This document shows, piece after piece, positions 53,294 through 56,200 of a stretch of 64,000 bases of DNA. Position numbers and translations under genes: made by a program. The number at the start of each line of letters is the position of its first letter. Within the stretch, counting starts at the first letter, position 1. Below the pieces are notes generated by a model that searched no databases, was not told where the DNA came from, and saw only the letters and a list, made by a program, of their open reading frames with translations. This stretch comes from Anthoceros angustus (lineage: Eukaryota; Plantae; Anthocerotophyta), in assembly GCA_010909165.1 (NCBI GenBank), contig VJWM01000182.1, positions 372,001 to 436,000 on the forward strand, given 5' to 3'.

Positions 53294-56200
53294 ATGAGTA
53301 GCCGCTACGACAGTCGGTATGGCGACCCGTCATCTTTCCGGGAAAGAAAGACGTAAGTGACGCGCGCCAGCTCTGAGGAGCTTTGCTTCACTGTTTATTC
53401 TGTACTTTAGATTGTCACACGCGGTGTTTTGGAGTGATGGCGTGCAAACGCTTTATGAAAGAGTTGTTGACATCGCCTGGTGCATGCAGTGACTTCGGTG
53501 GAGGGTATAGCAGTGGATCTGGTTACGGGAGGTCTAGCAGCGGGGGTGATTCGTACGGGGGCAGCGACAGATATGGCGGAGGGGGTTCCAGTAAACGGGA
53601 CTTGGATAACATACAGCTTCCCAAGGAGCAGTTTGATAATGTCATTCCCTTCGAGAAGAATTTCTATGTCGAGCACCCGTCTGTGTCAGCTATGAGTGAG
53701 GAGGAAGTGCTTGCTTACCGGAGGCGAAGAGAAATCACTGTTGAAGGGAGAAACGTTCCGAAGCCTGTTCGTACTTTCGAGGAAGCGTCTTTTCCAGGTA
53801 CGGTGGAGCGTAATTGTGATTGTTTCTGGAATCGACGTTTGTTGTAATGCTAAAATCATCTCTGCTGTTTTGCATGATGAAGATTATGTCCTTCATGAGG
53901 TCCTCAAGGCTGGGTTTACGGAGCCAACAGCTATACAAGCACAAGGGTGGCCCATGGCTCTTAAAGGACGGGACCTTGTTGGTCTCGCAGAGACGGGGTC
54001 AGGAAAAACTCTTGCCTATCTTTTACCTGCGATTGTGCATGTGAATGCACAGCCCTACCTAGGTGAGGTACACTACATGCTTAGGGTTCTTCTGCTCGTG
54101 TTTGATCATTCTAGTATTTACGCACACGGATGTTTGTATCCTACACCCTCTGGCAGCCTCTGGGGATGGCCCCATTGTACTGGTATTGGCGCCAACTAGG
54201 GAGCTAGCTGTGCAGATCCAGCAAGAAACCACCAAGTTTGGCGCATCTTCCAAAATCAAGAACACATGTATTTATGGAGGTGCTCCTAAAGGTCCACAAA
54301 TTCGGGACCTCCAAAAAGGTCAGTAGTTTTAGTCCGTGAGCTTCAGTGGATCAATTGTGATCCTTTCTCTCTTTTCCCCTCTAGCGCGAAACATTTTCCA
54401 TCATAAATTTTTGCGTAGCCTCAAGCACGGTTCTTTTTTTGCAGGGGTGGAGATTGTGATTGCAACTCCTGGTCGATTGATTGACATGCTTGATGGTCGT
54501 TACACCAATTTGCGGAGGGTGACATATTTGGTTCTTGACGAGGCTGACCGCATGTTAGATATGGGATTTGAGCCTCAAATACGGAAGATAGTGTCTCAGG
54601 TATTGTAGATCTCATTTCCAGGAATTTTCCATCTGCCTTCTTTCTCAAAACAATTGCTATTCTCTCCTGAGTGCCTGGCTGTACTGAAAGTAGTCGGAAT
54701 ACAGATCCGTCCAGATCGTCAAACGTTGTACTGGAGTGCCACTTGGCCCAAGGAAGTTGAGTTCCTTGCACGTCAGTTTCTTGCTGATCCTTACAAGGTA
54801 CGGTTCAGTTTATTTGAATTATGGGGTATGTGCCATGGGCATTTTCCCCTGGCAAATCTGAATTCTGATGATTGCTTTGGACCAGGTGATAATTGGCTCC
54901 CAAGACTTGAAAGCCAATCACTCAATTGAGCAGATAGTTGAAGTGGTCTCTGAGTATGACAAGTACCCAAGGTAAGCTGTTTGTTTTCAAGAGCTTTATT
55001 GTGATTACAGGCAGTCCAAAATAGGTTTAGCTCGGCTGGGGGTTTTGAAGGACATGCTGTGTCTTTGGATTTTGTACAAGGCTGGATTGTGTTCTTTTCA
55101 TCAGACCTGGCCATGGTAAGCTGCAAATTATCTCAGATCACATCCATGTGCAGGTTGATAAAGCTGCTTGAAACGATAATGGATGGAAGCCGGCTACTGA
55201 TATTCATGGAGACAAAGCGTGGTTGTGACCAAGTCACGAGGCAACTCCGTATGGATGGCTGGCCAGCTCTTTCAATTCACGGGGACAAGAGCCAGGCAGA
55301 GCGGGACTGGGTTCTGTCTGAGTTTAAGGCTGGCAAAAGCCCTATTATGACAGCCACAGATGTGGCTGCCCGTGGTCTGGGTATGTTGTTGCATGCATCC
55401 TAAGTTTTTAGCAGGGTGACCTCTAACATCTGCTAGACCTTCCTTTTCCATGTATCCTTGTCCGGTGTATGCCATGGTGGATTTATGAGCCGGAGGACAT
55501 GCTGTGCTGCCTGCTTTTTTATTGGTAGTGCTAAGGTTTCAGTCCCTTCTCCAAGCATTTGCATGAGTTCAGTGTCAGATCTCTACCTAGGTCACAAGCT
55601 ATGTGCATGTTGAGCTTCAGGAGCGGATGTGGTGTGATCGGCATCAGATGCAAGGGGGGACCACTTTAGGGGCGACATAAGGGTTGCTGTGCCTTACGTA
55701 TCAGGCACTGATCAATTCTTCTGGTCTCCCTTATGGTGATGAGAGCAAGGAGGCGGGGGCTGCTGGCCAGTTTCCAGGCGAACTACGTGATTCTGGCGTG
55801 GCGGCGGTGCAGTTTTCACACAGTTGGGTGATGCTGTGATTATTGAAGGAGATACTGCCGCCGCCACTGCTGTGGGCCACATGTATGTCCGGAGCTGGCT
55901 TATTCACGCAGCAGCCCTGTCTGTCTCTATGCGGCTCACTCCTTGCATTTATGATGAGTATGTGACCCTTATCCCTGTAAGGTGGTACATACCATGCGAT
56001 GTGTAGCACTGGTGGTTTTTTTTATTATTTAGTGAGGACATCTTGCTGTCATGTAGTGAGCTGTGGTTGACTCTATTGCCAACTGCGGAGAGATGGTGGT
56101 CTGCATGGTCGTCCAGCAGGAAGTCCTACAGCCCGATAGATCTGTGCGTGGGGTCTGGGTACTGCCTGAGTTCTTGTTTATTTAAGCTTTTAGTGGGTTT

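Follow-up and report, generated by a model that had tools for sequence, protein, structure and literature searches.

A conserved rod-shaped RNA in the long motif V intron of a bryophyte DDX5/DBP2-type helicase gene, a probable new element of self-regulation

Introduction

How helicases of the DBP2/DDX5 family limit themselves through a long, conserved intron is a question that has been open since the 1990s. It is raised again by a DEAD-box helicase gene of Anthoceros angustus (contig VJWM01000182.1, positions 372,001 to 436,000 of the forward strand; this whole stretch of 64,000 nucleotides (nt) is called the window below, and positions are counted from its first letter). The intron between exons 8 and 9 of this gene is unusually long, persists in RNA and contains a strongly paired, rod-shaped RNA fold. 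The rod lies exactly in the ancestral autoregulatory intron of the family, is conserved in bryophytes, and is probably a new self-regulation element.

A hairpin known as the DEAD motif was shown to act as a sensor of helicase activity only in 2026, and that hairpin belongs to another paralogue and another intron; the rod is a second structure, unrelated to it. Structured RNAs restricted to bryophytes escape motif screens that are biased toward angiosperms. The rod is present in the genetically tractable moss Physcomitrium patens, and the question of self-limitation is therefore directly testable. The starting point was an original prediction, made from the letters of the window, of an eight-helix intronic structure that masks both splice sites of a poison exon and serves as a helicase-sensing splicing switch.

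The helicase gene and its long intron

The gene features on which the argument depends are as follows.

53294 to 57111, forward strand: coding span of a DEAD-box helicase gene of the DDX5/DBP2/RH20-RH30 type, with ten coding exons and a stop codon near 57109.
55154 to 55380, forward strand: exon 8, which ends after motif V (...ATDVAARGL) and one further base, the first of the following codon.
55381 to 56662, forward strand: long intron of 1282 nt (GT..AG) at the DBP2/p68 intron position, partly retained in RNA.
56663 to 56908, forward strand: exon 9, which contains motif VI and runs into a GGRGGG repeat.

The coding sequence begins with an ATG at 53294, its nine introns are all supported by spliced contigs from public runs, and the product carries a C-terminal tail rich in RG/RGG. 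Judged by its N-terminus, its motif I region and the lack of DRH1-type sequences, the gene is a member of the RH20/RH30 (DDX5/DBP2) group. The block comprising the Q motif and motif I is RH20/RH30/DDX5-like, and differs from that of DRH1 in published supplementary sequences.

Spliced contigs of three species bear out the disproportionate length that had been noted for the intron: the other eight introns of the gene measure 85-182 nt, against the 1282 nt of 55381-56662. The long intron interrupts the codon after ..DVAARGL, ahead of motif VI, in agreement with the DBP2/p68 position originally proposed for it. All orthologous loci have an intron at this site, 1.8-2.5 kb long, and fragments of open reading frames (ORFs) from fungal-like and animal-like homologues also run past ARGL at the same codon. 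A transposon or repeat origin of the intron is not supported, the intron being unique in the window and holding no notable ORF.

Selective persistence of the intron in RNA

The RNA evidence consists of assembled contigs, and so speaks of presence; levels are rough and the libraries unlabelled. Three organisms are represented, namely organism A (X1), identical to the window, organism B (X10 for RNA and X18 for a DNA contig), ~92-98% identical to it, and organism C (X16). The normal joint 55380>56663 is present in RNA contigs of all three, as are unbroken contigs that lead from exon 8 through the whole of the long intron into exon 9. The depth of these long-intron contigs corresponds to ~10% of the mRNA depth in X1, ~6-27% in X10 and ~23% in X16, and contig coverage of the other eight introns was nil in X1, X10 and X16. 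Inefficient splicing with accumulation of intron-containing RNA was found for 55381-56662 alone among the nine introns.

Two orthologous loci provided transcripts of the same kind. A transcript-like contig of the Joint Genome Institute (JGI), L134, has its upstream introns spliced and the long intron fully retained, and L135, a transcript contig of the species represented by locus L003, likewise retains the 5' part of the long intron. Comparison of L135 (296-824) with L003 (2575-3103) showed that a short upstream intron, between the equivalents of exons 5 and 6, is also kept, the other introns being spliced. Contigs L137-L139 were considered as retained-intron RNA and rejected as RNA evidence, as they derive from whole-genome shotgun (WGS) runs of P. 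patens.

Organism B also uses an alternative donor inside the intron (splice junctions are marked by ^).

55381 to 55957, forward strand: 5' part of the intron, which becomes an exon 8 extension of 577 nt under the alternative donor and is strongly constrained between sister species.
55958 to 55963, forward strand: alternative 5' splice site GAG^GTATGT, 41 nt 3' of the rod, used in X10.

The corresponding joint, 55957>56663 (GT..AG), has a depth of 183 in X10, against 347 for the normal joint. Use of donor 55958 lengthens exon 8 by the 577 nt of the extension and brings in an immediate stop codon; the donor is predicted to form a local hairpin by pairing with 55987-55992 (mean pairing probability 0.88). 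The X10 contig covering 55351-55957 differs from the window by 9 mismatches and 1 gap in 608 nt (98.4% identical), and the X10 contig covering 55928-56691 by 54 mismatches and 19 gaps in 773 nt (~90.6% identical), while the exons of organisms A and B are 95-98.7% identical. The long intron thus persists selectively in RNA, and in one species a stop-generating donor adjoining the rod is in use. Unproductive, stop-containing transcripts, as originally envisaged, are indeed linked to this intron, but the forms seen are retention of the whole intron and use of donor 55958, and the poison exon is not supported.

A stable rod within the intron

The interval 55620-56010 has a minimum free energy (MFE) of -172.6 kcal/mol, against -143.7 +/- 6.6 for dinucleotide shuffles (z -4.36), and for 55650-56000 the z score falls to -6.1, with none of 100 shuffles as good. 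The fold thus proved more stable than shuffled controls, in line with what had been predicted. The eight nested complementary pairs can all be found where they were placed, four of them perfect and four with G-U, yet the eight-helix structure holds in its inner part alone. The inner helices are strong (pairing probability 0.81-0.999, with ~0.44-0.98 for helix He and 0.95 for the apical helix), whereas the three outer ones (55660-68/55978-86, 55677-87/55962-72 and 55745-52/55939-46) have an ensemble probability of about zero, because competing local pairings win. The elements of the rod and its surroundings are these.

55752 to 55924, forward strand: core rod, five stacked helices around a variable apical loop, scoring 108.6 bits with the covariance model R1 described below.
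55757 to 55765 (GGGCTGCTG) with 55909 to 55917 (CAGCAGCCC), forward strand: helix Ha, pairing probability 0.999, the fourth helix originally predicted.
55766 to 55772 (GCCAGTT) with 55893 to 55899 (AGCTGGC), forward strand: helix Hb, pairing probability 0.993, the fifth helix originally predicted.
55784 to 55789 (TACGTG) with 55880 to 55885 (CATGTA), forward strand: helix Hc, pairing probability 0.81, the sixth helix originally predicted, holding the donor GT 55883-84 of the proposed poison exon.
About 55794 to 55796 with 55877 to 55879, forward strand: helix Hd, GUGG/CCAC in other species, 97% of cells paired.
55798 to 55807 (GTGGCGGCGG) with 55858 to 55867 (CCGCCGCCAC), forward strand: helix He, a perfect 10 base pairs (bp), the seventh helix originally predicted.
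55808 to 55857, forward strand: apical region, ~45-80 nt across species, holding the apical helix 55819-23/55834-38 and the AG 55822-23.
55660 to 55687, forward strand: 5' arms of the two outermost helices, a sequence common to the window and locus L001 only, whose pairing is thermodynamically disfavoured.
55960 to 55992, forward strand: conserved 3' block TGTGRCC.TAT.CC.T..AAGGTGG, with a sequence like a 5' splice site, AAG^GTGG, at 55982.

The wide range of probabilities for He arises because its GGC repeat can slip register. AAGGTGG in the 3' block is shared by seven of the nine aligned loci (L134 has AAGGAGG and L072 AAGGTGT), and the structures of the 3' flank differ from species to species. 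GGCGTGGCGGCGG (55795-55807), which forms the 5' arm of the GC helix, is invariant and fits a two-tier G-quadruplex (G4) pattern. DDX5/Dbp2-type proteins and RGG tails bind G4s, and an alternation between duplex and G4 in the 5' arm of He is conceivable. A cmscan search of 52500-58500 on both strands returned no Rfam match at E<=1.

Conservation of the rod in orthologous introns

Orthologous loci, genomic or transcript, were fetched by protein searches with exon 8 alone as query, through fragmentary ORFs that run from exon 8 into the intron. They comprise L001; L002; L003-L008 (one species in many JGI samples); L009, L010 and L012; L072 (from the metagenome scan below); L134; and L136-L139. One of the runs behind L136-L139, SRR3099021, is listed as P. 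patens WGS in PMC13672439, and L136 is therefore taken as P. patens. The rod was found in the same intron of nine other loci, P. patens among them (ten loci with the window). Exon 8 of the orthologues is 77-81% identical to that of the window in DNA and ~97-100% identical in protein.

The arms of the rod are conserved well beyond the neutral level. Between the window and the other loci, identity at third codon positions is 0.44-0.50, close to saturation, against 0.72-0.79 in paired columns of the rod and 0.38-0.60 in unpaired columns; the unpaired columns diverge at about the synonymous rate. When L001 and L134 are compared with the moss group of L009, third positions are 0.44-0.56 and paired columns 0.86-0.91 identical. 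The apical region is barely alignable, and where its loop columns can be aligned the window agrees with the other loci at only 38-60% of positions. Although the alignment leans on the structure, conserved arms contrast strongly with a freely varying loop. In all-against-all comparisons of the introns, L009 shared with the other mosses only a block of ~375 nt at 80-82% identity, the level of the exons, and the core of this block is also present in L001 and the window.

Invariant in the alignments are GGGCUG..GGCCAG..UGG..UGGCGGCGG on the 5' side and GCCGCCGCCA..GCUGGCU..GCAGCCC on the 3' side. Within Ha, GGGCUG/CAGCCC is invariant in nine sequences, and the eighth pair, in its natural register, varies: mosses have A:U, L001 has G:C and the window has U:A. 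Hb appears as GGCCAGC/GCUGGCU in all loci, with 98.4% of cells paired, and Hc is the homologue of the top of conserved helix 3. He is invariant except in L134, which has three substitutions, all leading to G:U, and in L001, which has one mismatch. Helices Ha, Hb, Hc and He of the original prediction were thus found to be conserved, and its apical helix falls in the variable loop.

The same rod was obtained from RNAalifold and from every single-sequence MFE structure, and the orthologues have z scores of -1.6 to -4.6. A covariance model (R1) was built from nine sequences, and in the P. patens locus L136, a copy outside the training set, it gave a match of 193.6 bits in the same intron. R1 had no match in a Closterium locus (L011), in a Phaseolus RH30-like locus (L013), one locus each, or in the rest of the window. 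A metagenome scan with the signature of the 3' arm yielded 120 stretches, almost all of them GC-rich chance matches, and L072 as the only true homologue. In the model-fitted alignment 96.9% of paired cells form standard pairs, against 31-52% in slid registers. Four pairs are changed on both sides, a count equalled in 2 of 500 shuffles, and almost all one-sided changes lead to G:U. Since such changes would be A:C mismatches on the opposite strand, the sense RNA is the constrained molecule.

Mosses carry splice-like signals around the rod: a strong signal like a 3' splice site (a pyrimidine tract followed by CUGCAG^G) at the rod base, paired with a downstream CUGCAGA, and a sequence like a 5' splice site, AAG^GUGGG, in the conserved 3' block. 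In L136 (3780-4075), and in the same columns of L002, L003, L009, L010, L012 and L134, the former reads TTTGTTGTTCTGCAG^GGTGCG, and GCAAG^GTGGGC follows ~270 nt past it in all of these loci but L134 (AAGGAGG). In L136 the boundary CAG^G falls at 3799/3800 and AAG^GT at 4069/4070. As the two signals bracket the rod, a moss cassette of ~270 nt holding the whole rod is conceivable, and such an exon would reach a stop after 17 codons.

Two further observations concern this intron outside the bryophytes. Many angiosperm RH30-type fragments (including L013, 6572-7324) run from ARGL into the same intron with the peptide GRITVC-stop (or GRITAC, GRITVH, GRIIVF), and the first ~20 nt of the intron are therefore conserved across many seed plants; judging from these peptides, the intron start may hold a different conserved signal there. 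In L011, a contig of Closterium sp. NIES-53, the intron at the same codon is also long (~2.4-2.8 kb), and two copies each of the exon pieces DVAARGL and VKDIKCVIN lie within 4.2 kb, pointing to an assembly artefact or a local duplication.

A candidate role in self-regulation

From these results we infer that the rod (55752-55924), a conserved sense-strand structure of ~44 bp, is a cis-regulatory element that sets how much of the RNA has the intron removed productively and how much is processed unproductively, a reading to which we assign a probability of roughly 0.6. The unproductive outcomes would be retention of the intron or an extended exon 8, both of which reach the same stop, and the balance of outcomes would hold the helicase level steady. 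The folded rod would loop out ~170-330 nt, and pairing between the true splice sites would be favoured. Abundant helicase could loosen the helices, which at 6-11 bp would be within the reach of DEAD-box enzymes, and the loosened rod would lead to slow splicing or to a switch of donor, the transcript then being lost to nuclear retention or to nonsense-mediated decay (NMD).

The helicase-sensing step in this scheme is attractive because of the analogy with the DEAD motif and DBP2, the short helices and the RGG tail, and we propose it tentatively. In the most extended form of this proposal, the sensing of helicase activity by the rod would be ancient, going back at least to the divergence of the mosses from the window's lineage; the sensor would be situated in the DBP2/DDX5 autoregulatory intron and would have evolved separately from the DEAD motif of DRH1. 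Unwinding would lead to retention or to a stop-containing exon, and a G4 in GGCGUGGCGGCGG bound by the RGG tail could contribute. This wider proposal is possible, though doubtful as a whole.

Several observations weigh against a regulatory role of this kind. The outer helices, which would link the rod to the splice sites, are thermodynamically disfavoured or lineage-specific. Donor 55958 was observed in a single run, from one species, other lineages do not share its GT, and the RNA data come from assembled contigs only, not from reads. Covariation is modest, with nine sequences of an effective number of 1.74 in an alignment fitted to the model, and most paired columns never vary, so that they are uninformative on covariation either way. 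The Phaseolus and Closterium loci that gave no R1 match are the sole angiosperm and the sole charophyte locus searched. AtRH20 failed to trigger the DRH1 switch.

The alternative that survives best, although we think it unlikely, is that the conserved sequence serves mainly as a platform for protein binding or for decay, comparable to Mmi1 sites, or as a toggle between G4 and duplex in the GGCGUGGCGGCGG arm, with long-range pairing being secondary. Intron 2 of S. pombe dbp2 works through decay factors bound at Mmi1 sites (PMC4695336), many paired columns of the rod are invariant, and the two-tier G4 pattern is present. However, the arms are conserved jointly while the loop drifts, all three substitutions in the GC helix of L134 keep pairing through G:U, and Ha shows compensatory flips. 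A pure binding site is disfavoured because it would not require that pairing be kept.

Less probable again is that the rod is the precursor of a small or stable RNA excised from the intron (a microRNA (miRNA)-like hairpin or a stable intronic RNA), with retention as a by-product. The shape of the rod, an extended and imperfect hairpin whose arms are conserved and whose loop is free, would suit such a precursor, and there is a precedent in Moore et al. 2011, as cited in PMC4695336. The Rfam search speaks against it, as do conservation over more than 50 nt per arm together with flanking blocks, rather than over a 21-nt duplex, and internal loops and a 7-nt bulge that are atypical of plant miRNA stems.

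The poison exon itself fares worse, and we regard it as very improbable. Under the original prediction, a cassette exon of 59 nt (55824-55882), with its sites hidden in the apical helix and in 55784-89/55880-85, would be included when the helicase opens the fold, and would trigger NMD. The sequence does read as claimed, inclusion giving ARGL-V-G-stop; both sites are acceptable, and their masking is matched by predicted pairing (probability 0.95 for the AG and 0.81 for the GT). Neither site is conserved, however: the AG, like the apical helix, belongs to the variable, unalignable loop, and in place of the GT the eight moss-group loci have GC and L001 has a gap. Neither of the joints 55380>55824 and 55882>56663 occurs in the contigs of X1, X10 or X16, which may miss rare forms. 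That the fold is a product of chance or composition without function is hardly credible, for although the local sequence is GC-rich, with GGC repeats that pair easily, z is -4.4 to -6.1 against dinucleotide shuffles, conservation is at exon level across lineages with near-saturated synonymous sites, and the intron is single-copy in the window.

Other features of the window

Upstream of the helicase gene, Pfam matches identified an ORF for Transposase_21 (tnp2/CACTA-type) at 22745-23515, a transketolase gene at 34659-37892 and an S-adenosyl-L-homocysteine hydrolase gene at 45968-47426, all on the reverse strand. At 53275-53352, in the 5' untranslated region and first exon of the helicase gene, organisms B and C have a 14-nt deletion relative to the window. 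Their intron 1 joint, 53350>53490 in the window, is displaced by 2 nt with two extra letters, which is probably an alignment effect of divergence at the donor.

Comparison with known systems

The nearest relative of the rod among described plant RNAs is the DEAD motif of DRH1/RH14 and RH46, a single 20-bp hairpin in which an alternative 3' splice site is hidden. It is conserved in land plants, and disruptive and compensatory mutations together with helicase mutants showed that it senses helicase activity (Sack et al. 2025, PMC12218528; Burgardt et al. 2026, bioRxiv 10.64898/2026.01.23.701338). In DRH1, switch competence is conferred by the RG/RGG tail. Both structures are conserved intronic RNAs in an unusually long intron of a land-plant gene of the DDX5 family, both are linked to stop-containing splice variants and to intron retention, and both host proteins have an RG/RGG tail. 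The rod of mosses, moreover, has a CAG like that of a 3' splice site at its base.

The differences are nonetheless clear. The hosts are DRH1/RH14 or RH46 for the DEAD motif and an RH20/30-type gene for the rod. The intron with the DEAD motif lies just before the Q motif (between ..FPxEILRE and ..AGF..PTPIQ), and its equivalent in our helicase gene is the intron 53798-53882, of 85 nt, whereas the rod lies between motifs V and VI. One hairpin of ~20 bp contrasts with five helices and ~44 bp, and an alternative 3' site with the alternative 5' site and retention seen in the window's lineage; alternative 3' splice site use at the long intron was absent from the contigs of X1, X10 and X16. A pattern search with the DEAD consensus AG^GUGCGAUAUUYGCUC... 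gave one chance-level match elsewhere in the window, and the core of the motif is absent from the helicase gene. The published list of 16 motifs holds no RH20/RH30 entry, and the DEAD motif was found in only two Arabidopsis helicase genes (PMC12218528; bioRxiv 10.64898/2026.01.23.701338). The possibility that the rod is a DEAD motif was ruled out by host gene, intron position and sequence, and by the restriction of that motif to those two genes with none published for RH20/RH30; the distinctness from the DRH1-type element that had been suggested therefore holds.

The intron itself belongs to an older story. According to PMC4695336, which draws on Iggo 1991 among others, an intron conserved in position and length, and poorly spliced, occurs in S. 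cerevisiae DBP2, S. pombe dbp2 and human DDX5; the yeast DBP2 intron mediates a negative feedback that depends on helicase function (citing Barta & Iggo 1995), and in human p68/DDX5 the intron reportedly encodes a miRNA (citing Moore et al. 2011). The intron 55381-56662 resembles these in its place after ARGL in motif V, its unusual length, its inefficient splicing and the persistence of its RNA. It differs in that a conserved RNA structure was not found described for them in the accessible literature, nor did our literature search find a description of one in the plant RH20/RH30 intron.

Among other structured splicing switches, the zipper stem of RPL7B (PMC12311795) and the plant 45ABC, GRP7&8 and PTB2 elements (PMC12218528) are likewise cis structures, each within the pre-mRNA of the regulator itself, that shift splicing toward a non-coding product, and covariation in the published plant motifs is as modest as it is in the rod. 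Their genes and structures differ from those described here, and the protein acting on the rod is putative. Set beside the DEAD motif, the rod could reveal whether "unwinding sensors" are a recurrent solution in the control of helicases. If it does sense helicase activity, it would explain DBP2-type autoregulation in structural terms and would be a second RNA, unrelated to the first, that measures unwinding.

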